Below, one piece after another: positions 10,142 through 56,744 of a stretch of 64,000 bases of DNA. The stretch is from Selaginella moellendorffii (taxonomy: Eukaryota > Plantae > Lycopodiophyta), in NCBI RefSeq assembly GCF_000143415.4, contig NW_003314314.1:377771-441770 (forward strand), in the 5' to 3' direction. The number at the start of each line of letters is the position of its first letter. Positions within the stretch are counted from its first letter, which is position 1. A program made the position numbers and the translations under genes. The notes under the pieces are model-generated. The model did not search any database. It was not told the origin of the DNA and worked only from the letters and a program-made list of their open reading frames with translations.

Positions 10142-11536
<1,395 letters not shown>

Positions 11537-14228: not shown

Positions 14229-14889
14229 ATGGGAGCTCGCAAGGTACGAGTAATGTAGGACTCCCACACATCGATTTAATCTCGTAATCCCCGGATGGAT
14301 GCAAATTCCCCCAAAACACCAGATGGTCGTCAAGGTGAACATCCCCTGCGCAAAATGCCGCGACAAGCTGCTCGGCCAGATCTCCGCTGTGTCAGGTAAC
14401 TAAAGCACCACACTCTTGGATCTGGAGCAATTTCTCCGAGTCTATCCTCTCTCTCTCTCTCTCACCACTTTGCCCCTTTCTTCTCTGTGCGTGCTCCATT
14501 GTCGCGCAGGCGTCAAGAAGGTGGAATCCACCACCGAGTGCTGCCCAGTCTTCACCATCGTCGGCGACTTCAAGGTGGAGGACATCTTAAACGCGGCGGG
14601 GAAGAAGCGGCGGTGCCTCAAGGTGGAGTCCGTGGAGGAGCTCCCACCACCGCCAAAGCCCAAGCCCGAGCCCAAGCCGGAGCCCAAGCCGGAGCCCAAG
14701 CCCGACCCGCCAAAGGCCCCGCCAAAGGAGATTATCATCAGCGAGAAAGGTTGGCCAAAGAAGTTGCCAAACGTTCCTCCCGGTACCAGCCTTGTGATCG
14801 TGGTGGAGAACTTGAGCTTGTGCCCCAAGGATTTCGACCACCATGGCGGCGGTGGCCATGGCTGCGAGTGCTGCGATAGCTGCTGCTAA
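14229..14889 (+). CDS. small HMA-domain protein with Pro/Lys linker and His/Cys tail, copy 1 (155 aa)
   Basis: Exons 14229-14243, 14323-14395, 14510-14889: MGARK|MVVKVNIPCAKCRDKLLGQISAVS|GVKKVE..VGDFKVEDIL..(PKPE)n..HHGGGGHGCECCDSCC*. Confidence 0.85.
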
Positions 14890-15689
14890 GCCACCATAGT
14901 CTCTCTAGTTCTTCCTTTCGTACGCTGGACCGCGCAGTATAGCTATGGAGGCTGGCTCTTCTTCTCGCATCCATTTCGCGAGTACGATATGTCGTGCTTG
15001 TTTTGCTCTTCCGGGTTCTCCTCTCCTTCTCGGAAGTGGTGTCGGGAATAATAATCGCGTGTTAGAAAATGTGGTGGAGAGAATTCATACCAGAGTGACT
15101 TCTTTTCACTCCCTCCCGGTCACGATCTGTGAATCTTATAATTCTTTGGTTCTTTCCTCTTTGTTGGTTTCTCGCCTTTTTCTCTAATGCCCGCCATGGC
15201 CCGTCGCGGGGCGGCACGCCTCGTAGAGATTGTCAGCCAAGCATTTGACGTTTTGATCGCCCACAAAGACAATGTGCCGGATATATAAGTTTCAATATGT
15301 TGGTCGGTGCTGTTTTTTTTCGTCCAAACTCATTAAAGTTGGCCGCAATGTATATGAGTTGTTTTTTGATTTTGTGTGCAATCTCACCATACAGTTGGAC
15401 GAGTCAGATAAATAAAAATCATGAAATCTTCTTTCTCCCTGAAAGATGGCAATGGCATATTCCAAGGCGGAAGCACAGCGACACACGTCTCCTCCACCCG
15501 TCCGAAGATCAAGCTACCGAAAGTATAAGTTCTGGCAGAGCGTATGAAATCTACGTATACTTACGAGACATGACTTTGACGTGACAATCGCCTCATCCAT
15601 CGAGAAAGAAACCGAGTAACAGAAGTTTGTTTCCACTCTGATTCATCTAAACTAAGAACCGATGAACTGAGACTAACCTTAAGTTGCGA

Positions 15690-16052
15690 TCAATCGGGTG
15701 ACAATCCAGACCTTCGCATCCCACTGCGCGAATTGTTCTCGTCGGACCATCTCTCGTCCATCTTCTTCACTCGGCAGTCTTGCTCCCAGTGTCCACTCTT
15801 CCCGCAATAGCTGCAATTCCCGGGCTTCTTCTTCCCCCACAGATTCACGCCTCGCTCATCGCCCGTCCGGCGATAGCCCCGCCAGCTCGAGTTGTCTCTC
15901 ATCACCTGATCAAACTCCCCGAATGCAAACCCCGGGCAACTCCTGTTGGATCGAATCCAGTCCAGAGAGCCCACATTCTTCCCACAATCCGGGAACTTGG
16001 CCAACATGGCAGCCAAAGCACCGAGCTTCCCCCGAGCCACTCCAGCAGCCAT
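15690..16052 (-). CDS. small CCHC zinc-knuckle protein, possibly a gag-derived relic
   Basis: CSYCGKSGHWEQDC matches CX2CX4HX4C. The rest of the ORF is not recognised. Confidence 0.45.
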   Translation of the reverse strand: MAAGVARGKLGALAAMLAKFPDCGKNVGSLDWIRSNRSCPGFAFGEFDQVMRDNSSWRGYRRTGDERGVNLWGKKKPGNCSYCGKSGHWEQDCRVKKMDERWSDENNSRSGMRRSGLSPD

Positions 16053-16347
16053 GGATTCCCTTCATCCAAACACCAAGCAAGGAACTGGGCGATCTAGAAT
16101 CCCGATCTAAAGCTCACCAGTGGCGCTTCCTTCGCCAAAATGTAGCCCTAGAAGTTGCACAATTCTGGAGTTCGAATCTTGTGAGCACTCTCCGACAGTA
16201 TCTGCTTTTTTTTTGTCGGTCAGCGCCAGTCAGACGTCAGTCCACTCAAGTCAGAGACGACTTACAAGAGAGAGAAGCTCTCATTGTATATGAGCTGTGC
16301 ATCTTCTAGGGTCCCAGCCGGAGCGTGGAGTGCTTCTCTCCGCAACG

Positions 16348-16838
16348 ATGTCTCGAAAGGTATGAATTCGCAGTGCCCGGCAACTCAAATTCTGGTTTTT
16401 CCCCCAAAATCAACACCCACAGGCCGTCTTGAAAGTCGATCTTTGTGGAAAATGCAAGGACAATCTCTTGAAAAAGCTGTCCGAAGTCCCAGGTATCATC
16501 TCCCATCGCTCGGATTCTGATCTCTCCTTTGTCCTCTTGAATTTGCAGGAGTCGCGAAGGCCGAGGCTACCGGCGACCACCAATTCACCCTCACGGGTGA
16601 CTTCAAGATCGAGGACATCAACGCCGCCATAGCCAGCAAGAAGCGTTGCGTCTCCATCGAATCCGTGCAAGAGATCCCCAAGCCTGATCCACCAAAGCCG
16701 GATCCACCAAAGCCACCACCCGAGGTCGTGTGCCCAAACACGATTGTCATCCACACCAAGAATCTCGTCTTCTGTTTCCACGGCCGCAACATCGGCTGCC
16801 CCTGGGATCGCTGCTCGGATCGCTGCTGCAGCTGCTAG
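16348..16838 (+). CDS. small HMA-domain protein with Cys-rich tail, copy 2 (123 aa)
   Basis: Exons 16348-16359, 16423-16492, 16549-16838: MSRK|AVLKVDLCGKCKDNLLKKLSEVP|GVAKAE..TGDFKIEDI..PKPDPPKPDPPKPPP..GCPWDRCSDRCCSC*. Not in the ORF track. Confidence 0.85.
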
Positions 16839-17735
16839 ATTCTCCTCCTCCCAGGAATTCCTCCCTGGAATCCTTCCCTCCGGGCTGGAAAGGCCAAGAA
16901 ATCCATCAACAAAGGGAGGAGAAAATCACAAAAAAAGCAGAAAAAATCAAGCACATAACTTGTGGATGTTCGCCTTGGATCGGCGCGCGACAAATTTACG
17001 ATGGAGATGCCACTGGCACACGGTTGGTGTTTTCGAAATCCACAAAAAAAAAAAAGCAAAAAAGGAGTTTGAAGCTTAATCTTGAAACTCAGCTATTTTT
17101 CTTAGAGCTTGATCAACTATTTGGATCAACTTTCACAAGATTTCTTCCTGGGATCGACACAATATGTATTGTTGCCAGCGATCTCAAGGTTATAATAAGA
17201 CTTGGGCGATTCGATCCATCGCATGTCACCGTTTATTTCTTCATGTTTTCTACGTCCCACTTGGGCTAATTCTCAAAGCTTAGCTCTCTACCAAACAAAA
17301 GCAGCGCACATGTGACAATGGGATCCACCAAAGAAGTTGTAGCTTTCATTTTTAGCTGGCTGCCACCGAAGAGTATGTTTTCCTTTAATCTCTCTTTTTA
17401 TTATAATTTTTCAGAAAAAGGTGATAAAAGTACATGACATCATCTAACTTTTTCTTAATATGAGTTTGAATGGAAAAAGTTGTGCTCTCACTTTGGGGGA
17501 ATGAAACTGAGAAAGGCTTTCCAGACAATGACCTATACAGTCATGTTTAAAATGAGCTCTAGAGGTTGGGAAGTCAATGTTACTCCTGGTTTTTTCTCAT
17601 TGGTTCCTTCTCATGGTTTTGCTATAAAATTTTTGCTGTTTGGTCCTTGTTTCTCATGGTTTGATAAATATCTTGCACCTTTCATTTGCTACTCAGAAGA
17701 AAGCTCGAGTTTAACACAAGTTCTCTTGCGCAACA

Positions 17736-18113
17736 ATGAATTGGAAAGTATGGCTGTGAATTCTATAGTCTCTCTGGGATGATACTCAATCAGAATCTAT
17801 GTTGGTTTTTCTAGGCCATCGTCAAGATTCACGACTTCTGCTGGAGGGACAGCGTCGCGGGACAAATCTACGACAATCTCCCTGGTAATTTCTCCGGTAC
17901 ACACACCCAAACTACGTGCAAAATCTTTGATCCCTCGAAATCGCAGGCGTGATGAGGATGGAACTAAGTGGCTCCCAAGTGACTTACACGGGAGGCTTCA
18001 AGAAAGAGGATTTTCTAAAACAACTGGACGAGCACAAGAAATGCGCGAGTGTGGTGTCTTTGGCACCGATTGTCCAGCCGCCACCACCGCCACCGCCATG
18101 TAAATGCTGCTAG
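17736..18113 (+). CDS. small HMA-like protein, copy 3 (82 aa, CxxC degenerate)
   Basis: Exons 17736-17747, 17815-17884, 17947-18113: MNWK|AIVKIHDFCWRDSVAGQIYDNLP|GVMRMELSGSQVTYTGGFKKEDFLKQLDEHKKCASVVSLAPIVQPPPPPPPCKCC*. Same intron positions and phases as copies 1 and 2. Confidence 0.75.
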
Positions 18114-18388
18114 AAAGATAGATCGATCCAGCAAGAGATCACTCCACCCTAGAAGCTTATCGCCCATCAGTGGCGCTGTTAGTTCTATAGATCCACGGGA
18201 GTGATTTAGCGACTGTGTAAATAACCAAAGATTTCCAAACTACGTGCTTCGTGCTTCAAGACAGACTCGCCTTCAATCCTGGCCATTGGCCAACTTTGTT
18301 ACGTTCTAATCGATACTTATCATGGCTAATTGGTGATAAGCAAATAATATACCACCACCAGGGAGTCAAGGCTTTGTTCTTGGTGGCT

Positions 18389-20436
18389 ATGGCGGATGAT
18401 AGCCAGGGCAGTGGCTACCGGGAATGCGATGGGATCTACGCCAGTCTCGCGTCGCCGGTGGCAATGCCGCTCCATCCCCATCTGGATTTCGTCTCCTACA
18501 TGTTCTCGCAGCGATTTGGGAGGCCCGAGAGCGCCAGCAATGTCGCGATCGTGGATGGGAAATCCGGTCAGTCGCTCACTTGCTCGCAGCTGCGCCGATC
18601 GATCGAGGCGGTGGCGACAGGGCTGCACGAATCCGGCATCCGCCAGGGCGACGTTGTCATGATCTTGCTGCCCAACAGCCTCGAGTTCCCGGTCATGTTT
18701 AACGCGGCGCTGCGCATTGGCGCGGTCGTGACGACGATGAATCCCCAGAACACGCCCGCCGAGATCGCGCGCCAGATGCTGGATTCGCGTCCCAAGATGG
18801 TGCTCACGAATCGCGCCGGGGTCGATAAGGTGAGAGCCGCTTCCCCGGATCTCCCAATCGTGCTCGTGGACGAGGAAGAACGCGAAGAACACGGAAGAAC
18901 TCTAAACAGTGATGAGAAAAAGCCCCAATTCATCCCATTCTCTCGATTCCTCGCCTCGGATCCCGACCAGCGACCACGCAATCGATGCCTCATCCGCCAG
19001 AGCGATCCGGCAGCGCTGCTCTACTCGTCGGGCACCACCGGATTGAGCAAGGGCGTGGTGATCTCCCATGGAAACCTTATCGCCGCCATGGCCGTCCAGA
19101 ACCAAGTGCCCGAGGAGATGGATCGCGGCGACACGAATGTGGTGCTCTTCCCGATGTATCACATCGGCGGATTGATGTGGCTCTGCTGTGGAGCGATCAT
19201 GGGCGGCCCGACGTTCGTGCTGCTGCAGCGCTATGGATTGGCGGATCTGCTGCGCGCGGTGGAGCGGCACGGCGCCAACAAGATCACGTCCGCGCCGCCC
19301 GTCGCGCTGGATTTGCTCCACAGCGCCGAGACCGCACGCTACGATCTGCGATCGCTGAGAGCGCTCATCTGCGCCGCCGCGCCGCTGAGCAAGGAGACGA
19401 TCCAGGGCCTGATGATCAAGTTCCCCCACTTGGAGATGTTCATCCAGGTTTGAAGAATTCGTTGACTAACCGACAGTCCGTTGACTTGCGGTCATTGACC
19501 AACAGTTATGCTTGACTAACAGTCCTTTGACTAAATTGACTTTCTTCGGTTTTTTGTAGATGTATGGAATGACCGAGACTGTGACCGTGGGAAGCGGTGG
19601 AAGGGGCGTTATGGGATCTTCCGGGAGGCTAAATGCCACGCTGGAGGCTATGGTTGTGGACCTGGAGACCCGGAAATCACTGCCTCCTAATCAAAGAGGA
19701 GAGCTTTGGCTTCGAGGGCCACCAATCATGCAAGGTAAGTATAATTCTTATGGTCTTATGGTTTCATCTATGATTTCTCTATGGTTTGCATAGTCTTTGA
19801 TTTTACAAATTTATTGAACTTGCAGGCTATTTGAACAATCCAGTGGCCACCGCAGAGGCGATCGACAGTGAGGGCTGGCTACACACGGGAGATCTCGTGT
19901 ATTTTGATTCCAAGGGGTATTTATACATCGTAGACCGTCTCAAGGAGTTGATTAAGTACAAGGGATACCAGGTATTTACTTGTAAAGACATATCTCATAG
20001 CGAGAGAATTAACCTTGCTTTGCTTTCAAGGTTGCACCAGCAGAGCTAGAAGCACTACTGCTCACACATCCGGCCATAGTGGACTGTGCGGTAGTACCGT
20101 AAGTTTTACCAGCTTTCTTGTACATTGTTTTTACCCATTTTCTACAACTTTTTTACCTCGTAGGTTTCCAGATGAAGTGGCTGGAGAGATTCCACAAGCG
20201 TTTATCGTTAGGGCTCGAGACAATAGCATTTCTAGCGAAGAAGTCATGCGTTACGTAGCAGACCAAGTAAGAGATCTCTTTGATTTTAACTCGAAAACAA
20301 TCTTACAATTGTCTCTATGATCAAGGTGGCTCCGTACAAGAGAATCAGAAGAGTATCTTTCCTGGATAAGATTCCCAAGTCCGCCGCTGGTAAAATTCTT
20401 CGCAACGAGCTCAAGAAGGCGGCAAGCAAACTATAA
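18389..20436 (+). CDS. 4-coumarate:CoA ligase-like acyl-activating enzyme, peroxisomal (C-terminal SKL)
   Basis: [46 protein letters not shown]|[21 protein letters not shown]. Ends ...ASKL*. Confidence 0.93.
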
Positions 20437-20840
20437 CACACACACATATACGTTTTTTTTAACGGTGTCCGATTGTGCCAAGTCTCACAATCGGACGGCG
20501 TACAAGCTCTAACAAAACGCGTGGATTTCTTCGTTTACCCATTAGGGTTCTAGCGAAGGGATTTTGATGCTCCGGACGGATCTAGATGCCCTACATTGAG
20601 GGAATCGGTGACGAGGTAGTCCTAGCGGCAGTGTTTGCCGCGCCGGCTGTGATCGTCTACTGCTCTTCAGCTGGGTAAGACGGCCAGTAATTCTCGCGGG
20701 ATATCTAGTTTTCTGGATCGATCGTCGATTGCAGTGTGTTTGCTCGACTGAGAAAGGGATTGCAGTCCCTAGGGGTGTGGATCGTCCAAATTTTCCAGAT
20801 TTCGACAGCACCGCCGCCGCTAGATCATCCGCCTATTACC

Positions 20841-21641
20841 ATGGAGGCTCCGGACGAGAACGATTGCTGCTCGGTTTGCCACGATACTTTCATGCTCCCT
20901 TGCCAAGCGAACTGTGCTCATTGGTTTTGTGGTAAGCTATACATTTTTTTTGTGTGTGTGTGTTCTTTTGAGTCTCAGGAACTTTGATGGATTTCTTTTT
21001 TCTTTTTCTTTCTTCCAGGGGAATGCATTCTCAGAGTCTGGCAACACAGTGCTGCTTTACAGCCTTGCAAATGCCCGATTTGTCGCAGGACGATCAATCT
21101 TTTGATCCCGGGACGTGAGTATCAAGAGCGAAACCGAGATGCCGAGTCCGAGCGTTTGCTAAGAGAAATCTCAAAGTATAACCGGCTGTTTGGAGGAGCA
21201 CCTTCCAGCGTGATTCAGGTAGAAGAACACGGTTTCTTACATTCATTGACGAGTTGGTTTACAGCGTTTAAGAGACATGCCTTTGCTTTTGAGGCGTTTC
21301 TTTCGAGATCTTTTGGACCCTCAGCGAGCGCTTCTTATTTTACACAGAACACGCTTCATCCTAGTGGTAAACACACAGTCAAGAAAAAGACTTTGTAGCC
21401 TAATGTGCTCTTCTCAGGTTTTCTTATCAATGTGCTACGTGCTTTCGCCCATCGATCTTCTTCCAGAAGGTAATGTAACGGATCTCTTGGAAAGCTTGTT
21501 ATTGAAATCTCTACCTGTGACGCAGCCGTTTTGGGATTAATCGGCCTCGTCGACGATGCTCTGGTTGTGTTCTTCGCTCTCTTCCAAGTTTCCATGATCT
21601 ACAGGCGTTTTCTCGTTCGGCAACATGGGAATTACAGCTAA
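20841..21641 (+). CDS. RNF170-like RING E3 ligase (RING-HC plus DUF1232-type membrane region)
   Basis: CSVCHDTFMLPCQANCAHWFCG|ECILRVW..CKCPICRR and C-terminal YVLSPIDLLPE|AVLGLIGLVDD. Confidence 0.88.
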
Positions 21642-22689
21642 GTTTAGGCCTTTGCTTGCTCTTGCCAAATTTGTGTAGGTGTTGCAAATTAATTGCAAGA
21701 AACAGCGTTTGAAAGAGAAGCTTCTCATCTTTTCTTCAAGCGAGTCTCGATTGTTATGGAATTTTAAGTTATTTTTGGATAATTTTGTTTTACCCTTATA
21801 AAATAACAGCGACTACAACTCTTAAGGTTTTAAGACTTCAAGTATATTGTAAAAGATTCTTTACTTTAATCTTTTTCTCTAATTAAAAATTTAACATTAA
21901 TCATTTTAGTTATCATTAATATAAATCATAGTTACCATCCAAAGATTGTTTCATGGTTTATCAAGAGTTCATCCTTGCCATGGAGCTGAAAAACATATGC
22001 TTTAAGTGTGTGAGCAAGCTTTCTCTCACTCTTCCTTTAACAAGTGTGATGGGAAGACTAATAATTATACCTAGACTTTGGCATTCTCTGATGTTTACAA
22101 TCTAACTCTTCACACAGGCAAAGAGTAATCTTAATAAAAATCACACAATATTTTTCACTAGCAAAGCCTATTCTAAAGCTTTTACCACAAAAAGCTCTCG
22201 CATCCATGAGTAGCTTTGCCACAATATATGTGAAAGATTGCCATGTAAAATTATCATGCTTTATCTATTGTGTTTTTGTTTGTCAAAAGCTTCCTTTGTA
22301 TCAAGAGTGGTTAACACCTTTTATACAAGCTAATATAGTGAGCTGGGATAGAATATTTTAAATACCGCTTTAAAGAATTATATTATAGAATATTCTTTTA
22401 TATTAAAGTTTTTTAAAATTGTAAATTTTTAATTTTTATTTATTTAAAATAAAACTATAACTCTCCCTTTAACCTAATGGCAATTGCTTGATGAATCCCT
22501 TGAATCCACAATAACAATATATCCAAATGATCACATGCATTACAAAATCCTAAAGGACAAGATCACTTTTCTTAAAAAGGGTAAAGAACCAAGAAATAAT
22601 AATAAAATATTTGATCAATCCCAAGATAATTGTTGTCACGCTCCGGTCTTGCACGCGATCTAATTCATATCTATTGACGGCTTTGTACA

Positions 22690-23930: not shown

Positions 23931-26773
<2,843 letters not shown>

Positions 26774-41348: not shown

Positions 41349-43306
41349 ATGGATCGCCCGGCCAGAATCTTGCTTCTTGTTCTTGCGTGCTGCTGCGCAT
41401 CGCTCTTCTTCCCGCTCGCCGCCGCCTCGAGAGCGCTCAAGGATCATCGACACCAGGGATTCAATGCTAGCGCCAGCGCCAGCGGAGCCATCGATAATCC
41501 CAGGTCCGATTTCTTCCCCAGGGTTTCTTGTTTCTTGGATGCTTCGATTCCTCGTTCTTGTCTGGATCAGTGCCCCTGCTTGGGCGAGATTTGGAGGAAT
41601 TCCTTTCGGATTTCCAGTCCCATTCCTGTTAGCTAGAGCATTAGGTGAGATGTGTTGATTGTCGAGGCAGAAGAGGTACTTCCTAGTCGTTGTTCTTCTG
41701 GTGGATTTCCACCAGGGAGATTCGAACCCCTGGTCTGGTCTCACTCTTACTGCCGAGATTCGAACGCGCGTCCTCTTTGTCCTTTGAAAAAATTTCGACT
41801 CACTCCGGGTCTTTTTCTCAGAGGGAATGGCACACAAAGGAGGGAAGCGTTCTCGCTACTGGGCTGTGGCAGCAGCGGCAATCCGATCGACGACTGCTGG
41901 CGCTGCGACTCAAACTGGCACAACAACCGCAAGCGCCTGGCCGAATGCGCGATTGGATTCGGCCGCAACGCGATTGGGGGTAAGAACGGGGAGATCTACG
42001 TCGTCACCGACTCGAGCGACGACGACCCAGTGAACCCCAAGCCCGGCACGCTGCGCTACGGCGTCATCCAGTCGGAGCCGCTGTGGATCATCTTCGAGCG
42101 CGACATGAGCATCCGGCTGAGCCAGGAGTTGATCGTCAACAGCTACAAGACGATCGATGGGCGAGGCGCCAACGTCGAGATTGCTCACGGCCCCTGCATC
42201 ACGATCCAGTACGTGTCCCATGTCATCGTCCACGGCATCGCGGTCCACGATTGCAAGCCTGGGGGACCGGCGATGGTGAGGAGCAGCACGACTCACTTCG
42301 GATGGAGGACGGTGTCGGACGGGGACGGGATTTCCATCTTTGGATCCAACAACATCTGGGTGGATCACTGCACGCTCGCACGCTGCACTGATGGTCTCAT
42401 CGATGCCATCATGGCTTCCACGGACATTACCATTTCAAACAACCATTTCAGCGACCATGACAAGGTGTGTGCTCTGCTCTCTCTCTTTTCTCCAAAGTAT
42501 TCCTTGTTTACAGCAATTCCCCGGACTGGGTTCTTGCATGGGTGTTTTTTTTCTTGATGTGTTCTTGCGTCTTTGCTCGCCAGGTTGCTTGGGTGATTGT
42601 TTTCTTTATGTGTTCTTGTGTGTTTGCTCGCTAGATTGCGTGTCTTGGAAGATTTCTGGTAGCGTAACTGGTTTTTCTCACGCTTGAGTTGTCGATTTGC
42701 AGGTGATGCTCCTGGGACACAACGACGATTACACTGCGGACCGGGCAATGCAAGTGACTGTAGCTTACAATCACTTTGGACAGGGTTTAATCGAAAGAAT
42801 GCCGAGGTCAGCCTCATCCTTTTGCTTTCTTAGCGCACGGGTTTGGCTTTTCTAAACTGGATTTCGTTTTCTTCTTTTGCTTTTGTAGATGCCGACACGG
42901 ATACTTCCACGTCGTCAACAACGATTACACCGAGTGGAGGATGTACGCCATTGGAGGCAGCGCGAACCCCACGATTAACGCCGAAGGCAATAGATTCTTT
43001 GCGGGATTCAACGAAAACTCGAAAGAGGTAACTCTTTACAACTTTTTGTTTGTATACACAAACCTCATGTTTGCTTCTAAACAGATAACAAAGCGAGAGT
43101 ACACGGAGGAATCCATATGGAAGAGCTGGAACTGGAGATCCGAGGGGAACTTGTTCCTGAATGGAGCGTACTTCATCACGTCTGGAGCTGGATCCGGGTC
43201 GGTCTACGGCAAGGCCTCGAGCCTCGCCGCCAAGCCCGCGGCCTACGTTGGTGAGCTAACTCTCTCGGCAGGAGCACTTCTCTGCGGCATAGGATTTCCA
43301 TGCTGA
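41349..43306 (+). CDS. pectate lyase (PL1 family), multi-exon
   Basis: Signal peptide, [41 protein letters not shown]|[29 protein letters not shown]. Confidence 0.96.
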
Positions 43307-43713: not shown

Positions 43714-45178
43714 CTAGCTCTTGCTTCCCTTGTGCTTAAACGCTGCCGGACACAAGTTACTAATCAAGCAGTCGCCACAGCGAGGACGAAGTGGAGTGCA
43801 AATGGTCTGACCAAATCCAACCTGCGAAGAAAATCGATGCATGAAAAAAACATGGAACAAAAGCGAACCAGCAATGGATTGATCGGAACCCATTCTTCCC
43901 TCGGCAGCCACGACTCTAGCGAGATCCGCGTCTCCTCTGGAGTTTTCGTGTCCTTTCAAAGCAAACAAGTATGGATCACAGTCTAGAGAGAACTTTGCTG
44001 GAAGAAACAACGTACCAAGCGTTTCTTGGATGTTGATTTTGGATGTGAGACCCATTCCAGCCGGTTTGTGATACGGTGGACGTGAGTGTCGACACAAATG
44101 CCATGCACGCTCTCCCAGCCGACGTTCATCACCTAGATAAAGTTTTGGAACTCCGAAGGAACAAAAGGAAGAACTTTGTTTTACCAGATGAGCCATCTTT
44201 GGGCCGATTCCAGGAAGAGCGAGGAGTTCACTGAGCGTTTTAGGAATGTCTCCTTGGTACTTTTCCAGGCACAGTGCCGCGACTTTCTTGAGATAACTGG
44301 CCTTTCTCGCATAGAAGCCAACCTTTCACGAGTCACAGGATCAGAAAAGAGTCGCGAACGCCAGAGTTTTCCGCACCGGATAGATCGCATCTCTGATTGT
44401 CGACTCTTCGGCTTTGGAGAGATCTTCCATCGACAACAAGTGCCGCTCCGAAAGCCGCTTCATCGCACCTGAGCAGGCTTAAAGTTAAGATCCGAGGGGT
44501 ATAGGAAACGATCAGAGTATCAAATAATAAACACCATGGTTTACTTCGTCTTTAGTCTGGCTGGAGAGCAGCGCAGATATGAGAACTGCAACTCTTCGCT
44601 CCTGAAAAGCGAAGAAAATCCATTTTGTTCTTCCAAGAAGAAGAAGAAACTAAAAACCTTTGGTGGAAGAGAGATTCCAGCTTTCTCGCATCCCATGGAG
44701 TCGACTGGGGCATCCTCAGAAGCTCTCATTTTGCGTATCCCTTCCAAAACTTCTTTCCACTTTGGAGGCTCTCCTGTTAGATGATTACTTTGCTACAAAT
44801 AAAGATGGAATAGAATTGAATAGAAGCGCTACCTTTCTTCTTTAAATCCATAGCTTGATTGCCATCGTCACAATTTCCCTATCGAAAGGAATGAAAAAAA
44901 GAAAGAAAGAGAAAGAAAGAATGCGAACCTCGTAAGAGACTTTTACAAATGCACGCTTGGAAGCCCTCTGGCTATGGACATTCGAAGAACTCCTTTTGTA
45001 AGTCCTAAGGCTGGAGGGGCTGGATTCCTGCTTGATCCTCCTCGGCACAAACGCATCGCTCTTGAGCTCAAACTCGGAGAAAACCGATGAAACATCGCGA
45101 TTCCTGCGATGCGCCTCACGAGAAAATGAGTGCATCAGACAAGAAAGGAAACTCACTGTGCAGGAGGAGGCGCGCCAT
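43714..45178 (-). CDS. NTH1: endonuclease III homolog (HhH-GPD DNA glycosylase/AP lyase), multi-exon
   Basis: [71 protein letters not shown] (4Fe-4S loop). Start codon approximate. Confidence 0.9.
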
Positions 45179-46562
45179 CGCCAGAAAACTCCGCCATTAG
45201 AATTAATCGAAGAAACCTAAAACCCTGCGATATGTTCCATCAGGAATGTAAAATAAAATTTGCTGATGCTATTGACCAGTCAACGAAAATTGTTGACCAC
45301 GTGTCCATTGACCGTGACCAGTCAACGATGGCCGATGGGTCAACGGCACGACTTGACTAAAATCTTCCGAAAACTCTTTAAAATTTGCTAGTATATAGCA
45401 ATTTTTTTCATAAAAAATAACTTGGTAACTAGAATGACTGAGTCACTTCATGATTATCAAAAAGAACAATATAGAAGAAGGTGCTCCCCTGGGTCTGTCA
45501 GTCTTTTGCAATGTCTTGGATTGAACCGGGGACCTCTACTGTGTGAGCCACCCAAGCTCATGAAACCTAGCTTCACTCTGTATCTCCAGTATTCTTTTCT
45601 CGATCATGGCTTGGAAGGCATACGCTGAAAGTCTCCTTCCAATTCACAATTGCTGATGAAGGTTGTGCCCAAGATCTAGGCACCGTGCACGAAATGCAAA
45701 GATAAGATTGTATCTCAGATCTATTACAACGTCTCAGGTACGTCCAAGAGAAATCTCTTCATGACAATAGAGCTGTTTCAAACTATATGCTTATATTCTG
45801 GAAGTGGATGATCCACACTACACATTCACTGACGATTTAAAAAAAATCATAAAGAAGAAGAAGAAGAGGAGTTCGAATCAGGAGATTTCTGAGCCAAACA
45901 AGGATAAACATGGCACCTGCTGTTGCTGCTCTTCTAGTGGTCTGAAGCTTGACCATTTCTAGAAGTTCTACGTTTTTTCACTTGCCAGCTTAATCTTATT
46001 CCCTTTTCTATTTTTATTTTTAGAGTCTCGACAAAGCCAATGTGGCCGATGAATTCTCGGCCAGCTCCATCTGACAGCCTGGTCGCTCGTCTCGTGAGGA
46101 AAGGTCTTCCATAACAACTTTATGAATTCTTCACATGACATTTTTTTAAGTTGTCGTCCACCTTGCCTCTGACTCCTTGTAGTACCGTTGGACACAATCT
46201 CACAAGTTCATGTCAAAGTCAATGCTTGTAAACAGGGACTTGACTTGAATAGTGCCTATAGCCAAACTTGCATTGCTTTTTATGAAGCTTTTACGATTCC
46301 CCGGAATGATTCCTTCATGCAGGCGTAACATCCTTGAAATTTAATCGCAACGATGGGAACGACCATTTCAACGTAGCACTCGCGTGCTCGGGATGTTAGA
46401 TGGACAATCCTATTGCAAGAAATTTTTTATGAAAGAAAACGAATGATCTGGTGCTCTACGTTAAACCCTCGTTCGAAATTTATTACAAGGAAAACAGAGA
46501 GGAGACATCGATCATCTCATCCACAACGAAAACTCTTTGTGATCAGCAATCAGTCCCGAATT

Positions 46563-46971
46563 CTAGCAGCAGCAGCAAGAGCAGCAGCAGCAGCAATCGT
46601 CCTTTGGCTTCGGCTTGGGCTTTTCCACCTTGATCTCCTGGAAGGATTCCACAGAAATACACTTGCGTTGCTTCTCGGTGGCCTTGAGGATGTCGTCCAC
46701 CTTGAAATCACCCGTGAAGGTGTAAAAGGGATCGTTAACCTCCACTTTCTTCACACCTGCAAGAGCACGAAGATCTCTTGATCAGCGATCAAAATTTGGG
46801 AGAATTTGCGGAAATCTACACTCACCGGAGACGCCGTGATAGATCTGAGACATAATCTTGTCCTTGCATTTGTTGCAAGAGTCCACTTTCAAGACAACCT
46901 GCAGCACAGAGCTCGAGATCAAACAAGGCTCAACGAAATCAGCCAGACGCAATGCTCACCTTCCAAGCCAT
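46563..46971 (-). CDS. small HMA-domain protein with poly-Cys tail, copy 4 (about 92 aa)
   Basis: MAWK|VVLKVDSCNKCKDKIMSQIYHGVS|GVKKVEVNDPFYTFTGDFKVDDILKA..KPKPKPKDDCCCCCSCCCC*. Confidence 0.85.
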
Positions 46972-47389: not shown

Positions 47390-47962
47390 GGTCTGTTTAG
47401 AAGCAAACATGAGGTTTGTATACAGACAAAAAGTTGTAAGAGTTAACCTCTTTCGAGTTTTCGTTGAATCCCTTTGGCGTTAATCATGGGGATGGCTCCA
47501 GTCGGTGTAATCGTTGTTGACGACGTGGAAGTATCCATGTCGGCATCTACAAAAGCAGAAGAAGAAGACGAAATCCTGTTCGAACAGGGCAATGCAAGTT
47601 TACAATCACTTTGGACAGCATCCTTTTTCTTTCTTAGCTCACAGCAGCACGACATTCTGATCTGCGATCTACGAGATCCGAGCAACCCTACGTCGCGGCG
47701 CGGAATGGAGCGTACTTCATCACATCTGGAGTTGGATCCGGGTCGGTCTAGGGCAAAGCGTCGAGCCTCGCCGCCAAGCCGCGGCCTACGTCAGTAGCAC
47801 TTCTCTGCGGCACAGATTCCATGCTGACTAGTGATTATCATCGCCAGTCGTCATCAGCAGCTGTACAGCATTACTGGACTGCGGACTAATTGTTATCCCT
47901 CTTAATTATTTGAAGGTCTCGGAAGGAATAAGCTGGTGCAATATCATTTGAAGGATGGTTAC

Positions 47963-47999
<37 letters not shown>

Positions 48000-48190: not shown

Positions 48191-49161
48191 AATAGATCAT
48201 ATGTGGATAAAAGATATAATGGAATAGTGCTAGTTGCTGCAACACAATGTGCAGCAATTTATTTTGTGTTGCTGATTAGGCAAATGGGAGAGTTTGAGAA
48301 TATTCACAACATATTATTATTCTATAAATGTGATAACATAATAGAATGCTTATTACTATTTAACATTTATTCCTTGGAGAAACTACATGGTTAACTAAAC
48401 TAAAGATAAGGTAGTACCAACTTGAGGAACACCCAATTGCTGGTCTGACGAATGAGCCTAGCAGCTCATCTAGACAAAAAGTGGGGTGAATCTAGTAGGC
48501 CAGGGCATTGAGATGGAACAGCTGTTTGCAGGGCAGAAATGTGCTCAAGGACTTGTATACGTATGCGGATCCATCATACACGTGGTGCTCTCTCTCCAGG
48601 AGTGCAGATGAAAGATATGTGGATTATATTGCCCAGCTCCTGTTCGACGATCTGCTGCCTCCACCTTAATTGTCTTGGGAAATCACAGCTTTGATCGCAA
48701 CTGAGACACTAGATACCGAGTCGGAGAGACGGAGACCGGAGAGGGCAAGCCGTACATACTTGGGGCGAAAGATGGACTGCTGGTTCTAGATTAATCATAG
48801 ATTAATATAAGTAATTTGAATTATATCCCAGCAAGCTACATACGGCAACTCGCATTACTTTTTCGAAGCTTCTACGATTCCCCGCTGATTCCTTTATGCA
48901 GGCTTTGTGTGTCAACATCCTTGAAATTTAAACATTTCCGCTCCCCCAAAGATGGGAAGAACCATTTCAACGTAGCACTCGCATGCTCTGGATGTTAGAA
49001 TCTCAATCCTATTGCAACAAAAATTTGGTGAAATACACCGAATGATCAGGTGCTCTACGTTAAACCCTCGTTCGAACTTGATTACAAGGAAAACAGAGAG
49101 GAGAGATCGATCATCTCATCCACAACAAAACCTATATATGATCAGCAATCAGTCCCGAATT

Positions 49162-49570
49162 CTAGCAGCAGGAGCAAGAGCAGCAGCAGCAGCAATCGTC
49201 CTTTGGCTTCGGCTTGGGCTTTTCCACCTTGATCTCATGGACGGATTCCACAGAAATACACTTGCGTTTCTTCTCGGTGGCCTTGAGGACGTCGTCCACC
49301 TTGAAATCACCCGTGAAGGTGTAAAGGGGATCTTTAACCTCCACTTTCTTCACACCTGCAAGAGCACGAAGATCTCTTGATCAGCGATCAAAATTTGGGA
49401 GAATTTGCGGAAATCTACACTCACCGGAGACGCCGTGATAGATCTGAGACATCATCCTGTCCTTGCATTTGTTGCAAGAGTCCACTTTCAAGACAACCTG
49501 GAGCACAGAGCTCGAGATCAAACAAGGCTCAACGAAATCAGCCAGACGCAATGCTCACCTTCCAAGCCAT
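49162..49570 (-). CDS. small HMA-domain protein with poly-Cys tail, copy 5
   Basis: MAWK|VVLKVDSCNKCKDRMMSQIYHGVS|GVKKVEVKDPLYTFTGDFKVDDVLKA..KDDCCCCCSCSCC*. Confidence 0.85.
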
Positions 49571-50234
49571 CTTGATTGTCTACGAATTTGCAGATCACAG
49601 TTGTGAAATTCGCAGCTTTGACAAGCTTGAGACACTAGATACCGGAGGACGGAGAAGCGGAAGAGAAGAGGGCCCTGCTGCTGACTGGGGAGACGTCATG
49701 AATTTATATCCGAGCAGCAGTCGTTCCACTCCGTTTACGCAGAAAGTTTCCCGTAGGAATTGCCGTGTGGAAGCCGTGTTTGTAATCCCGCGCACGTTCG
49801 TAAAAAGAAAACGTTTTTTTATTATAATACTTTTTATATCGAGACCTAGAATCCATTTGGCGCCAAAGCCCTAATTTTTTGAACAGAAATGTAGGGTTTC
49901 ATCTTGATGGTCCCTGGCGCGCTCACACCGCCTGGATCGGCACGCTCGTCGTGCGGTGGAAGATCGCCCCCAATTCGACAGCCAGGGCGTCATGATCCAG
50001 GAGGAGCGCCGCCGAATCTGTGGCAAGCACGGCGTGGAGCCCCACTTCTGCGATTGCGTCCACGACGCCATCTCCAGCGTCATCGCGTGCCTCCGCAAGG
50101 TCTGGTAACTGGATCTTTGCGAGCTTCGAATTCGCGGATGGATTGGAGTACCTCTCCTCGGGGATGCCAGCGAGTTCCAGCGGCGTTTTGGAGAATCTCT
50201 TCACGCCGTCCATGCAAGAAAGCGCTCAAGGGGT

Positions 50235-51612
50235 TCCTGCAAGCGCTTGGCGGAATGCGCGATTGGATTCGGCCGCATGGTGTAAGACTCGATCTTTGGG
50301 TCCGTCCAACAACATCTGGCACGCTCGCTCGCTCCACTGATGGTCTCATCGACGCCATCATGGCTTCCACGACAAGGTGAGTGCTCTGCTCTCTCTTTTC
50401 TCCAAAGTTTTCCTTGTTTACAGCATTTCCCCGGAACAGTTACGATACCAGAAATCTTCGAGCGAACACACAGGAACACATAAAGAAAGCAATCACCCAA
50501 ACAATCTGGCGAGCAAAGACGCAAGAACACATCAAGAAAAAAACCACCCATGCAAGAACCCAGTTTTATTCACGCTATTTGCAGGCTCAGATCTCCAGTT
50601 CCAGCTCTTCCAGATGGATTCCTCCGTGCACTCTCGCTTTGTTATCTGTTTAGAAGCAAACACGAGGTTTGTATACAGACAAAAAGTTGTAAGAGTTAAC
50701 CTCTTTCGAGTTTTCGTTGAATCCCGCAAAGAATTTATTGCCTTTGGCGTTACCTCCAATGGCTCCAGTCGGTGTAATCGTTGTTGACGACGTGGAAGTA
50801 TCCATGTCGGCATCTACAAAAGCAGAAGAAGAAGACGAAATCCTGTTCGAACGGGGCAATACAAGTTTACGATCACTTTGGACAGCATCCTTTTTCTTTC
50901 TTAGCTCACAGCAGCACGACATTCTGATCTGCGATCTACGAGATCCGAGCAACCCTACGTCGCGGCGCGGAATGGAGCGTACTTCATCACATCTGGAGCT
51001 GGATCCGGAAGGAATAAGCGAGCGTGTTCCATCGCTAGCTCCATCTCTCTCCTCCATCTCAATGGAAGAAAGAAGAAGGAAAGTCTGGCAACCTCCGCCG
51101 GGAATGGATGAACACTGGAAAGAGTTCTCTAGCCCTGGCACGGAAGCGTTCTCTCCATTTATGAAACAAAGAAAGAAGTTGTACCTCTGGAAGTTTTGCT
51201 TGATACTTCTTAGCTCTTGCTTCCCTTGACATGCCTAAACGCTGCTTGACACAAGTTAGTAATGAAGCAGTCGCCACAGCAAGGCCAAGCGGATTGCAAA
51301 TGGTCTGACCAAATCCATGCATGAAAAAAACATGGAACAAAATGGATTGATCGGAACCCATTCTTCCCCCGGCAACCACGACTCTAGCGAGATCCACGTC
51401 TCCTCTGGAGTTTTCGTGTCCTTTCAAAGCAAACAAGTATGGATCACAGTATAGAGAGAACTTTGCTGGAAGAAACAACGTACGAAGCGTTTTTTTGGAT
51501 GTTGATTTTGGATATGATACGCATTCCAGTCGGTTTGTAATCCGGTGGACGTGAGTGTCGACACAAATGCATGCACGCTCTCCACGTTCATCACCTACAT
51601 AAAGTTTTGGAA
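50235..51612. pseudogene. scrambled pectate lyase fragments plus a 3' fragment of NTH1
   Basis: Direct PL exon-2 remnants (50237-50420), inverted PL intron-2 and exon-4/5 pieces (50430-50880), and NTH1 3' exons ([22 protein letters not shown]) at about 51210-51610 on the minus strand. Confidence 0.8.
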
Positions 51613-52423
51613 GGCAAAATGATTTATAAATAAAATATAAATGAGACAAAACAGATATAAAGCTATAATATATAAATAAAAAATACATATAACTCAATAT
51701 ATTATTCTAAATGAACAAATAAACGAACACAACGAAAAAATAATATAGTATACACAAGGTACAACATGAATATGGAAATTCCTGTCCTACAAATTTCAGC
51801 TTACCAAATAACACAAGAAAAATACAAATACTATATAAAATATTACATTTAAAAAAGAAAATAGCAATTGAAATAACACAAAAAATAGCAACGGAAAATG
51901 AACTAGTAAATGGAGCAGATGGAGTATTATAAAATGTAACCCATATCAAAGAAGAAAACATAATAGATAGAATCCCCAAATATAGAAACAGGTGAAAAAA
52001 CAAAAGCTAAAGAGTAAATAAAAATAATTTTAAAAAACAAGATACCAATAAGAAAAGTAACAAGAATAATAAATATTGCTAAAATCCAAAATTATGTTTT
52101 AAACAGAACCCACCATATGTAGGAAGAATAATACACAGAGCTTAAGGATCAACAGTAAAACAATTAGAATATGACCTGTATAAAACAAAATATCAAAGAC
52201 AAGCATATATAACATTATCAAGAGCACAAACATTAGAGGTAATAAAGATGCAGCTAAAGACATAATAAGAATGACAACAGAAGCACCATGGCAAATTAAT
52301 TTAATAGATTTACAAAAAGAGAAAAAATCTAACCAAACTAATACAAGTTTTAAATATAACATCTGTTACATCATATCAAGAAGATATAAAGAGTGTTTCA
52401 ATATTATTATTATTAAATATAAT

Positions 52424-52426
<3 letters not shown>

Positions 52427-52499
<73 letters not shown>
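52427..52499. repeat. (TA)n microsatellite within an AT-rich block (about 51613-52900)
   Basis: Long uninterrupted TA run. Confidence 0.95.
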
Positions 52500-52503
<4 letters not shown>

Positions 52504-54041
52504 ACCCATATAGCAATATTTCATACAAATGACTATAAATCAGAAAAATTAAAACATTTAAAAACAGAAAAAATGGCAATGTCATATATATCACTAGTGA
52601 AAAATAATAAATAAATACAAATACTAAATTTACATAGAAAACCTGGAACAATTATATAAATATTTATAAAATAACTACATATGTATATATATATATAAAA
52701 TAATTACAGGAAATTTCAATATTGACTATCAAAATGAAGAAGCAAAACCAATGGAGATATATATAAATAATAAAAGACAATACACATTATAAGAAACTAA
52801 TAGATCATATGTGGATAAAAGATATAATGAAGTAGTACCAGCATACTGGACAGATCAAAACAAATTATATAGTAAAAAATATTAAAAAAAAAAAAACAAA
52901 ACAAGCATTGCTGCAACACAATGTGCAGCAATTTATTTTGTGTTGCTGATTACGCAAACTGTTATAAATGGGAGAGTTTGAGAATATTCACAAAATATTA
53001 TTATTCTATAGCGGGGATTTAATGTGCTAGGGCTGGCGGCCGGACGAGGCCGTGATGGCGGGGATGATCGAGTCGTGCTGCAACATAATTGAATGTTTAT
53101 AATGTTAAACCTTTTTACTATGTAACATTTATTCCTTGGAGAAACTACATGGTTAACTAAACCAAAGATAACTGGTCATCTAGCAGAACACCCAATTGCT
53201 GGTCTGACGAATGAGCCTAGCAGCTCATCTAGACAAAAGTGGGATGAATCTAGTTGCCATAAAACTTAGGCCAGGGCATTGAGATGGAACAGCTGTTTGC
53301 AGGGTGACAGCCCATGACAGTGGAAAGAAGAGTGGGATGAGGGATCCTTGTCCTCGCAGTTGAGCAAAAACTGGATGTATGCGGATCCATCATACACGTG
53401 GTGCTCTCTCTCCAGGAGTGCAGATGAAAGGTATGTGGATTATATTGCCCAGCTCCTGTTCGACGATCTGCTGCCTCCACCTTAATTGTCTTGGGAAATC
53501 ACAGCTTTGATAGCAGCTGAGACACTAGATAGACGGAGAGCGGAGAGGGCAAAGCCGTACATACTTGGAGCGGAAGATGGACTGCTGGTTCTATATTAAT
53601 CATAGATTAATATAAGTAATTTGAATTATATCCAAATCTGAACAAACCATAAACCTGTAGACCAAGTCAATGTTTTGAACGAGGATTTGACTTGACCATT
53701 GAATAGTCAAGCACGTTCACACAGGTTAGCAAGCTACGTACAGCACGCATTACTTTTTTGAAGCTTCTATGATTCTCCCACTGATTCCTTCATGCAGGCT
53801 TTGTGTGTCAACATCCTTGAAATTTAAACATTTCCGCTCCCGTAAAGATGGGAAGGACCATTTCAACGTAGCACTCGCGTGCTCTGGATGTTAGATTGAC
53901 AATCTCAATCCTATTGCAACAAAAACTTGGTGAAAGAAACCGAAACCCCTCGTTCGATTTGATTAGAACTTACATGAGAGGAGAGATTGATCATCTCATC
54001 CACAACAAAACCTCTCTATGATCAGTAATCAGTCACGAATT

Positions 54042-54445
54042 CTAGCAGCAGCAGCAAGAGCAGCGGCAGCAGCAGCAATCGTCCTTTGGCTTGGGCTTTT
54101 CCACCTTGATCTCCTGGACGGATTCCACAGAAATACACTTGCGTTTCTTCTCGGTGGCCTTGAGGATGTCGTCCACCTTGAAATCACCCGTGAAGGTGTA
54201 AAGGGGATCGTTAACCTCCACTTTCTTCACACCTGCAAGAGCACGAAGATCTCTTGATCAGCGATCAAAATTTGGGAGAATTTGCGGAAATCTACACTCA
54301 CCGGAGACGCCGTGATAGATCTGAGACATCATCCTGTCCTTGCATTTGTTGCAAGAGTCCACTTTCAAGACAACCTGCAGCACAGAGCTCGAGATCAGAC
54401 AAGGCTCAACGAAATCAGAGACGCAATGCTCACCTTCCAAGCCAT
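54042..54445 (-). CDS. small HMA-domain protein with poly-Cys tail, copy 6
   Basis: MAWK|VVLKVDSCNKCKDRMMSQIYHGVS|GVKKVEVNDPLYTFTGDFKVDDILKA..KPKPKDDCCCCRCSCCCC*. Confidence 0.85.
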
Positions 54446-54934
54446 CTTGATTGTCTACGAATTTGCAGATCACAGTTGTGAAATTCGCAGCTTTGACAAG
54501 CTTGAGACACTAGATACGGAATGAAGAGGGCCCTGCTGCTGACTGGGGAGACGTCATGAATTTATATCCGAGCAGCAGTCGGATGGAATGCTTTCCACTC
54601 GTTTTACGCGGAAAGTTTCCCGTAGGAATTGCCGCGTGGAAGCCGTCTTTGTATGTACGATGAATCCCGCGCACGTTCGTAAAGAGAAAACGTTTTTTTT
54701 ATTATAATACTTTTTATAAGACCTATAATCCGTTTGGCGCCAAAGCCCTAATTGTTTGAACAGAAATGTAGGGTTTGATCGCTGGCGTGCAAGACCTGGC
54801 GCGCTCACACCGCCTGGATCGGCACTGTTGTCGTGCGGTGGAAGATCGCCCCCAATTCGACAACCAGGGCGTCATGATCCAGAAGGAGCGCCGCTCGAAT
54901 CTGTGGCAAGCACGAAACAAAGAACAAGGCCAGA

Positions 54935-55750
54935 GAACTCTGGCCGAGGTTGCCAAACTTTCCTTCTTCTTTCTTCTATGAAGATGGAGATGGAGCTCCA
55001 ATCTCTCTCCATCATGTAACCATCCTTCTAGCGATGGAACACACTCACTTATTCCATCCAGAAACCTTTAAAACATCATAGCCCGCAGTGGATAATTAAG
55101 AGGGCGAGACCGATCGACAAGAATGTTGTACAGCTGCTGATGACGACTGGCGATGGCGATGATCATCCTCAAGTCAGCATGGAAATCCTACTCCGCAGGG
55201 AATTGCTCCTGCCGAGAGAGTTAGCTCACCAATGTAGGCCGTGGGCTTGGCAGCGAGGCTCGAGGCTTTGCCATAGACCGATCCAGCTCTCCAGACGTGA
55301 TGAAGTACGCTCCATTCAGGAACAAGTTCTTCCCGGATCTCCAGTGCCAGCTCTTCCAGATTGATTTCTCAGTGTACTCTCGCTTTATGATCAAACATCA
55401 GTTTTGTAGCCTATACAAAGAAAAAGTTCAAAAAAGCTTTACCTCTTTCGAGTTTTTGCAAAGAATGTATTGCCTTCAATTGTGGGATTTGCGCTGCCTC
55501 CAATGGCGTACATCTTCCATTCTGTGTAGTCATGGTTGACAATGTGGAAGTATCCGTGTCGGCATCTACCAAAGCAAAAGAAGAATACGAAATCCAGTTA
55601 GAAAAGCCAAACCCGTGCGCAAAGAAAGCAAAAGCGTGAGGCTGACCTCGGCATTCTTTCGACTAAACCCTGTTTAAAGTGATTGTAAGCTACAGTCACT
55701 TGCATTGCCCGGTCCGCAGTGTAATCGTCGTTGTGTCCCAGGAGCATCCA
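54935..55750 (-). pseudogene. inverted copy of the pectate lyase 3' exons and 3' flank
   Basis: Reverse complement of about 42700-43580 ([39 protein letters not shown]) with substitutions and indels. Confidence 0.85.
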
Positions 55751-55939
55751 AAGCGTGAAAAAAAGGAGATCTAGGAGGTGTGAGCGTGCCAGGCCTTGCA
55801 GACCGTCAGCAACAAAAGGAGATTGAGAGCGTGGTACCGGAAGATCTGGAGAAAGCGCTCCAAGAAAGAGATTTCTTTCAAAAAATTATGACAAATTTGA
55901 AAAACTCAGTTGGCGGTCAATTGGCGCCAAAATCCAAAA

Positions 55940-56024
55940 TGGGGTGAGAGATGCTCGAACTCTCGACCTCAGGATTTCTCAGGAGCTATGAGACCTACGC
56001 GCTGACCAACTGCGCCACCACCTC
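55940..56024 (-). tRNA. intron-containing elongator tRNA-Met(CAT), variant
   Basis: GAGGTGGTGGCGCAGTTGGTCAGCGCGTAGGTCTCATA[GCTCCTGAGAA]ATCCTGAGGTCGAGAGTTCGAGCATCTCTCACCCCA, with an 11-nt intron one base 3' of the anticodon, as in plant elongator tRNA-Met. One mismatch each in the acceptor and T stems. Confidence 0.85.
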
Positions 56025-56330
56025 TTCTAGAAACTTCTTATATAATTATAAGTCAAACCGTGCATTTTATTTTTCATCAGATTCATTGGACGTAAGTTCA
56101 AGCAAGGACGCCTTCCACGCGGGCGAAACTTTAAGCGGAAACCGAGTGGAAAGGACTGGAAATCTTGCGTCGCACGTTACTCGGGTATAAATTCATGACG
56201 TCTCCCCAGTCAGCAGCAGGGCCCTCTTCTCTTCTGCTTCTCCGTCTCTCCGACTCTCGTGGTTATTGGTATCGCTTGTCAAAGAGCTGCGAATCCGTGA
56301 TCTTCTCGATCAAATTCGTAGACAATTAAG

Positions 56331-56744
56331 ATGGCTTGGAAGGTGAGCATTGCGTCTGGCTGATTTCGTTGATTGTTTGATCTCGAGCTCTGCGCTGTAG
56401 GTTGTCTTGAAAGTGGACTCTTGCAACAAATGCAAGGACAAGGTTATGTCTCAGATCTATCACGGCGTCTCCGGTGAGTGTAGATTTCCGCGAATTCTCC
56501 CAAATTTCGATGCTGTGATCGCTGAACAAGAGATCTTCATGCTCTTGCAGGTGTGAAGAAAGTGGAGGTTAAAGATCCCCTTTACACCTTCACAGGTGAT
56601 TTCAAGGTGGACGACATCCTCAAGGCCATCGAGAAGAAACGGAAGTGTATATCTGTGGAATCCGTCCAGGAGATCAAGGTGGAAAAGCCCAAGCCGAAGC
56701 CAAAGGACGATTGCTGCTGCTGCTGCTCCTGCTCCTGCTGCTAG
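56331..56744 (+). CDS. small HMA-domain protein with poly-Cys tail, copy 7 (92 aa)
   Basis: Exons 56331-56342, 56401-56473, 56551-56744: MAWK|VVLKVDSCNKCKDKVMSQIYHGVS|GVKKVEVKDPLY..KDDCCCCCSCSCC*. TATA-like GGGTATAAATT at about 56183. Confidence 0.87.

Follow-up and report, generated by a model that had tools for sequence, protein, structure and literature searches.

Seven small genes in a 64,000-nucleotide stretch of Selaginella moellendorffii scaffold GL377618.1 (the window) encode HMA-domain proteins that end in a cluster of cysteines. We read these genes, g1 to g7, as a tandem HMA family derived from HIPPs, with a remodelled C-terminus that probably acts as a membrane-anchoring tail, and put the probability of this reading at roughly 0.55; that the tail is a lipid anchor, which is one part of it, comes close to an even bet. 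We built the gene models by direct reading of the sequence and enumeration of GT-AG models; the public locus is identical over window positions 13348-19838. All seven three-exon genes are intact at the places proposed for them by the first-pass annotation, and the six tail strings that it listed are exact to the letter.

Four of the genes lie on the plus strand. The 155-residue HMA protein of g1 (14229..14889; exons 14229-14243, 14323-14395 and 14510-14889) ends in CECCDSCC, and g2 (16348..16838; exons 16348-16359, 16423-16492 and 16549-16838) encodes a 123-residue HMA protein with the tail CSDRCCSC. The product of g3 (17736..18113; exons 17736-17747, 17815-17884 and 17947-18113) has 82 residues and ends in CKCC; that of g7 (56331..56744; exons 56331-56342, 56401-56473 and 56551-56744) has 92 and ends in CCCCCSCSCC. 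The minus strand carries g4 (46563..46971; exons 46971-46960, 46898-46826 and 46756-46563; 92 residues, tail CCCCCSCCCC), g5 (49162..49570; exons 49570-49559, 49497-49425 and 49355-49162; 92 residues, tail CCCCCSCSCC) and g6 (54042..54445; exons 54445-54434, 54374-54302 and 54232-54042; 91 residues, tail CCCCRCSCCCC).

The gene layout is shared throughout. Exon 1 comprises 4-5 codons, exon 2 encodes beta1, the CxxC loop region and helix 1, and exon 3 supplies the remainder of the domain (T/V-G-D/G-F-K), then a KKRKC-type loop that is conserved, the Pro/Lys(/Glu) linker and, up to the stop codon, the cysteine tail; the first-pass annotation had described the short first exon, the helix (GDFK) and the linker correctly. 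It had also claimed a common CxxC exon closed by a phase-1 intron at G-V. The intron is there in 7/7 genes, within the Gly codon, and the same exon 2-exon 3 join as in g4 is found in P0033:88-175, a near-identical g4-type database copy with a mis-modelled N-terminus. The CxxC of the beta1-alpha1 loop is present in six genes (g1, g2 and g4-g7, as CAKC, CGKC or CNKC) but not in g3, which has FCWRDS in its place. A cysteine at the start of beta-4 is invariant (7/7). Among the individual features, the linker of g1 consists of PEPK repeats with an IVVENLSLC motif and an HHGGGGH stretch directly ahead of the tail, and g3 has a Pro7 linker. A secreted protein was considered and rejected: read by eye, the N-termini (MAWKVVLKV, MSRKAVLKV) have no hydrophobic signal-like stretch.

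For the region of g1-g3 (14100-18200), we aligned RNA contigs from four runs, each of a different study. The six introns predicted for these genes were all spliced as expected, each with a GT..AG joint exactly where the model places it. In g1, the joint 14243|14323 was found in runs X1 and X7, and 14395|14510 in X1, X6 and X7. For g2, RNA contigs contained both 16359|16423 and 16492|16549, and for g3, 17747|17815 occurred in X6 and X7 and 17884|17947 in all four runs. The runs are recorded only as 'RNA?'; they contain RNA-derived sequence, because spliced joints are present, including one in a minus-strand neighbour (15513/15565). One X3 contig (record 8, window 14367-15513) is unspliced across g1 intron 2 into this neighbour, either because the intron was retained and transcription read through or because this run contains carried-over DNA.

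Four database proteins served as stand-ins for the family in searches and fold prediction: P0034 (identical to g2), P0032:159-246 (g7-type), P0033:88-175 (g4-type) and P0038 (g1-like). The Pfam HMA model PF00403 matched g2 (P0034) at 25.5 bits and P0038 at 28.1 bits, above the gathering cut-off of 24.8, and the g4- and g7-type pieces are homologous to g2 at 43-54% identity. Single exons gave no Pfam HMA match, because half of a 60-residue domain is too short. Similarly, an exon-3 profile retrieved nothing meaningful among PDB sequences and the full-domain profile was required; with it, 22 of 23 PDB matches were HMA chains. AlphaFold models gave a beta-alpha-beta-beta-alpha-beta fold for g2 (domain pLDDT 84-90) and, for the g7 allele P0032:159-246, the elements E2-7, H9-22, E26-32, E35-40, H44-52 and E58-64 (pLDDT 78.6), with linker and tail disordered in both. 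In a Foldseek search of the PDB with the g7-type model, 50/50 among the matches listed were HMA domains, with TM-scores by target of 0.48-0.73; they include OsHIPP43, OsHPP09, the HMA domains of Pik-1 and RGA5, Atx1 and CopZ. Neighbours in the ESM Atlas were streptophyte HMA/HIPP clusters, which is a lead only. On these predicted structures and profile matches, the HMA fold suggested by the first-pass annotation is established, for the poly-cysteine members too.

The nearest relative outside the genus is a HIPP. A word-indexed search with the full-domain profile returned a single significant non-Selaginella protein, P0043, annotated as 'HIPP2-like' in Typha latifolia and closing with the canonical CaaX box CSIM; hhalign aligned it with the family at a probability of 98.5% (E 3.9e-15, 38% identity over 77 columns). 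As in the Selaginella family, P0043 has an LKVD-x-C-x-KCK motif, a Pro-rich linker (PPPPPPPKP) and a Cys-bearing C-terminal stretch. Its single intron is in phase 1 and falls in the same Gly codon as Selaginella intron 2. Kinship with HIPP/HPP proteins, as proposed in the first pass, is borne out by this angiosperm HIPP, which ends in a CaaX box and has its phase-1 intron at the same place. The further claim that HIPPs share the whole exon layout is right as to the Gly-codon intron; the mini first exon, however, is absent from P0043, the one outside HIPP gene in the comparison.

Searches for similarly tailed proteins led back to Selaginella. Against 1.84 billion representatives, the exon-3 profile gave seven real matches, every one an S. 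moellendorffii protein, besides P0037 and P0039, two repeat proteins matched spuriously; covering only half of the domain, the profile lacks the length to detect ordinary HMA proteins and says little on distant kin. A word search with g4 exon 3, restricted to lengths of 35-110 aa, yielded no candidate, the database entries of 175 and 246 aa being outside that range, and one with g1 exon 3 returned low-complexity PEPK-type matches only. The view that the tails are lineage-specific agrees with these results, as neither the exon-3 profile nor the word-indexed full-domain search found similarly tailed relatives outside S. moellendorffii.

Sequence comparison supports a relationship of the Selaginella family to HIPP/HPP proteins and a HIPP architecture of HMA domain, flexible linker and terminal cysteine signal. 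Both groups have an N-terminal HMA domain, a flexible linker rich in Pro, Lys and Glu, a cysteine signal at the extreme C-terminus and the phase-1 Gly-codon intron, and both are tandemly expanded and occur in vascular plants. They differ at the end of the protein, where HIPPs have a canonical CaaX box (CSIM in P0043) and the Selaginella proteins have CC- or CSC-ending clusters of 3-10 cysteines. The Selaginella a1 and a2 positions are Cys, Ser or Lys instead of aliphatic, g1 has no Cys at -4, g3 has no CxxC and prenylation is putative here; the Selaginella genes also carry the additional first exon of 4-5 codons. HPPs, which lack a prenylation motif (ATX1, CCH, NaKR1 and others), are likewise small soluble plant HMA proteins, and with an unprenylated tail the Selaginella family would formally belong to them. 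We know of no HPP described with a terminal cysteine cluster.

The cysteine cluster is always the last element of the protein, across paralogs that are 38-54% identical in the domain. Tails span 4-11 residues with 3-10 cysteines. The end is CC in g1, in g3-g7 and in two paralogs, P0035 and P0038; with CSC in g2, a Rab-type CC/CXC end is found in 7/7 window genes. The last four residues are DSCC (g1), CCSC (g2), CKCC (g3), CCCC (g4, g6) and CSCC (g5, g7); six of the seven have Cys at -4, g1 being the exception, and a1 and a2 are non-aliphatic. The farnesyltransferase of Arabidopsis (PFT) takes Cys at X and shows no selectivity at a1; at a2, strong exclusion is limited to charged residues (PMC3017772). 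By this comparison, the Selaginella ends are atypical, yet not obviously excluded, CaaX boxes. The earlier description of these tails as replacing a typical CaaX box holds in that they are not typical boxes, but it was drawn too sharply, given that six of seven combine Cys -4 with X = Cys, an X residue that Arabidopsis PFT accepts.

The tails of g4-g7 are encoded by an imperfect (TGC)10-11 microsatellite, in which TGC is the sole Cys codon and is interrupted by TCT or TCC (Ser) and CGC (Arg), each one step from TGC. The g4 tail reads (TGC)5 TCT (TGC)4 at 46566-46595; the others lie at 49165-49194 (g5), 54045-54077 (g6) and 56712-56741 (g7). A Lys-rich stretch, KVEKPKPKPKDD, stands directly upstream of the tail in these four genes. 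Among the amino-acid repeats of mammals, poly-cysteine is described as absent (PMC3523016), which makes four or more intact copies with such a tract unusual.

We propose that g1-g7 belong to a tandem family that evolves by birth and death and encodes small, cytosolic, Atx1-like HMA proteins; within the HIPP/HPP lineage, its closest kin would be the small 'CxKC' HIPPs. The cysteine cluster stands where HIPPs carry their CaaX box and would be a remodelled HIPP C-terminus, which in the young copies g4-g7 would have grown into the TGC microsatellite. The Cys at -4, where present, may be prenylated and the adjacent cysteines S-acylated, and the lipidated tail would then tether the HMA domain to a membrane, as in NbHIPP26, which relies on isoprenylation together with S-acylation for its targeting to membranes and plasmodesmata (PMC12835825). 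Through its CxxC loop, the HMA domain itself may bind either a partner protein or a soft metal. We favour a membrane anchor because the tail is strictly terminal, its CC/CXC end is conserved, the nearest relative has its CaaX box at this position, the upstream stretch of g4-g7 is rich in lysine and NbHIPP26 provides a precedent. A cytosolic location, lipidation and metal binding are what we infer for these proteins. Other lipidated cysteine motifs (Rab CC/CXC ends, the CSP cysteine string, and the prenylated and S-acylated ends of H-Ras, type-II ROPs and NbHIPP26) resemble the family in its terminal CC/CXC, its adjacent cysteines and, for g4-g7, the Lys-rich stretch ahead of them; unlike Rab and CSP, the Selaginella proteins have neither a Rab fold for REP nor a DnaJ domain, and their lipidation is putative.

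The family extends beyond the seven genes. A search with tblastn, followed by sequence reading, identified an eighth copy on the plus strand (45606..45962), a pseudogene of the P0035 type whose intron 1 donor is GC instead of GT, with an in-frame TAG in exon 2 and a partly deleted GDFK helix; its tail is CCCCSSSGLKLDHF, and the terminal CC is lost. Three further copies lie within ~20 kb beyond the window end, in locus L003 (GL377618.1 439799-460649 reversed, overlapping the window from 62029) at ~10440-10851 (+), 13846-14290 (+) and 16330-16050 (-). One, of the P0035 type, is an intact gene with the tail DSCCCCSSCC, whose public model has a wrong N-terminus. Another, of the g4-g7 type, has the tail CCCCCCSSS followed by a TGA one codon early, and the third has decayed. 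P0038 is an unlinked, g1-like paralog with the same three-exon layout and the tail DCDSCC, named 'HIPP43' in RefSeq. The claim of a seven-member family is accordingly right for the intact genes in the window and too low for the family, which also includes the pseudogene, the three copies past the window end and at least one unlinked paralog.

Because neighbouring copies are decaying, we regard the family as one of birth and death. The g4-g7 units measure ~0.9-1.2 kb and are 83-90% identical overall. Their gene bodies resemble one another more closely than the flanks do (introns of g4-g6 are 129/130 identical, the flanks ~90%), and variants among g4-g7 are shared in a mosaic pattern, a sign of gene conversion. 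Among g4-g6, the exons differ almost only by non-synonymous changes, with dN/dS about 1 or higher. Between g4 and g5 there are nine non-synonymous changes, no synonymous change and one intron change (Fisher p = 0.026; pooled over g4-g6, p = 0.16). The pattern is compatible with relaxed or diversifying selection, the counts being thin and confounded by conversion. Gene fragments have been co-duplicated with the HMA units, at 43714-44196 (-), 51059-51697 (-), 42941-43306 (+), 47443-47685 (-) and 50650-51141 (-). Some are endonuclease III-like pieces, with weak Pfam matches only (EndIII_4Fe-2S, HhH-GPD); others resemble, by eye, the 3' end of a pectate lyase gene and have no Pfam match. These fragments look broken, whereas the HMA copies stay intact.

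Several observations weigh against the HIPP-derived, membrane-anchored reading. The CaaX route cannot hold family-wide, because g1, P0038 and P0035 have no Cys at -4 (DSCC, DSCC and SSCC, respectively), and an a2 of Cys or Ser is non-canonical for CaaX. Rab geranylgeranyl transferase, which handles CC/CXC ends, is no obvious alternative route, because it recognises Rab only in complex with REP (PMC6866125); the Selaginella domain has the HMA and not the Rab fold in AlphaFold and Foldseek. Pfam HMA gave no match for the g4-g7-type sequences themselves, and by their substitutions the youngest copies are not visibly under purifying selection. Finally, a run of ten thiols would equally suit a metal-thiolate cluster.

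This last point underlies the main rival, which we rate as distinctly less probable and which is compatible with a lipid anchor: the tail, like a metallothionein or the C-terminus of HMA4, would be a metal-binding module that forms a Cu(I), Cd(II) or Zn(II) thiolate cluster, is loaded or unloaded by the HMA domain and serves cytosolic buffering or sequestration with no lipid involved. CC-rich C-termini of the plant HMA2/HMA4 pumps bind Zn and Cd, and several HIPPs confer Cd tolerance. The cysteine-dense tails, with up to ten cysteines within 8-11 residues and with CC, CxC and CCxCC spacings, fit such a module, as do the CxxC kept in six of seven proteins, the invariant beta-4 Cys and the HHGGGGH stretch just ahead of the g1 tail. 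Against it, a thiolate cluster needs neither the extreme C-terminal place nor a CC/CXC end, yet all members have both across deep divergence; g3 keeps the terminal motif with just CKCC and no CxxC, and the tail occupies the position of the prenylation box in P0043. Pfam searches of the exon-3 translations, tails included, gave no metallothionein family match. Metallothioneins and the tails of the P1B-ATPases HMA2/HMA4 share dense CC, CxC and CCxCC patterns with the family, in the pumps beside an HMA domain, but no homology was detected, and the Selaginella cluster is short, homopolymeric in g4-g7 and always at the extreme C-terminus. Judged by sequence, the metallothionein resemblance of the tail is compositional only. 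The first-pass idea of an HMA domain 'fused' to a metallothionein-like module fits the sequence poorly, as the tail looks remodelled in place from a HIPP C-terminus and those of g4-g7 resemble the product of TGC slippage.

Less probable still is that these proteins are effector targets or baits, like the small HMA proteins of grasses, with an arms race driving tandem amplification and diversification and the tail only placing the protein at the membrane or plasmodesmata. Best structure and profile matches do include OsHIPP19, OsHIPP43, OsHPP09 and the integrated HMA domains of Pik-1 and RGA5, although similarity to rice HMA proteins simply follows from the shared fold. The tandem birth-and-death dynamics and the excess of non-synonymous changes among g4-g6 beside near-identical introns would agree with an arms race, but these changes are tiny in number and gene conversion confounds dN/dS. 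To our knowledge, no lycophyte effector-HMA interaction has been reported, which also counts against this explanation.

It is equally improbable that g4-g7 are recent, largely neutral duplicates whose tails are a functionless, slippage-expanded TGC microsatellite, with only the older g1 and g2 (g3 less clearly) as working genes: the dN/dS values among g4-g6, the decaying neighbours (pseudogene 45606-45962 and, past the window, the decayed copy and the one whose tail is cut by TGA) and the imperfect trinucleotide repeat would fit, but all four copies retain intact frames, both GT-AG introns and a terminal CC, Cys-cluster tails are conserved in paralogs less than 55% identical, and the mammalian lack of poly-cysteine despite equal slippage opportunity implies selection against such tracts, so that tolerance in at least four copies is notable (PMC3523016).

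A bolder reading is that the poly-cysteine tail, (TGC)n with 9-10 Cys in 10-11 residues, is a new kind of functional plant C-terminal module. It would be either a cysteine-string lipid anchor replacing CaaX or a tethered metal-thiolate cluster fed by the protein's own HMA domain, having arisen in lycophytes from a HIPP CaaX box by slippage and been kept by selection. We advance this only tentatively, with the odds against it. If true, the tail would be among very few natural poly-cysteine tracts in any proteome.

Part of the cluster is already annotated in public resources. The gene models there include g1, with its 155-residue product, and g2, which is identical to P0034 (EFJ16496.1, XP_002982251.1; UniProt D8SG01, 'HMA domain-containing protein'). 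Two entries from another scaffold, P0032 and P0033, are mis-modelled: the g7-type and g4-type proteins, respectively, that they contain carry spurious N-terminal extensions. The HMA identity of g2 and of these two entries is already in automatic annotations. The scaffold's public gene table lists no gene at 17736-18113, where g3 is transcribed and spliced; public annotation thus misses or mis-models g3 and the true g4-g7 models. A literature search for HMA proteins with cysteine-rich or poly-cysteine C-termini found no such clade described, and the HIPP/HPP census of S. moellendorffii by de Abreu-Neto et al. (2013) counts five HIPPs and four HPPs, as given in PMC12835825.

Two other genes adjoin g1-g3. 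Between g1 and g2, at ~15400-16150, lies a small spliced minus-strand gene with a CT..AC joint, 15513/15565, in all four runs; its product has 120 residues in the public annotation and, by eye, a CCHC zinc-knuckle-like motif, CSYCGKSGHWEQDC. Directly downstream of g3, from 18380 onward on the plus strand, is an AMP-binding (4-coumarate-CoA-ligase-like) gene with a public product of 553 residues (PF00501 and PF13193).

The HIPP family is large and restricted to vascular plants, and the purpose of their prenyl tail (membrane or plasmodesmal targeting, metal handling or effector targeting) is debated. The swap of a CaaX box for a run of cysteines in a lycophyte is a natural experiment on this question. 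The tails of g4-g7 also represent a rare tolerated poly-cysteine tract encoded by a TGC microsatellite, a type of repeat that mammalian proteins are reported to lack (PMC3523016). A lipidated tail would reveal another way of anchoring early in vascular-plant evolution, and a metal-binding one would make the protein a chaperone with a built-in store.

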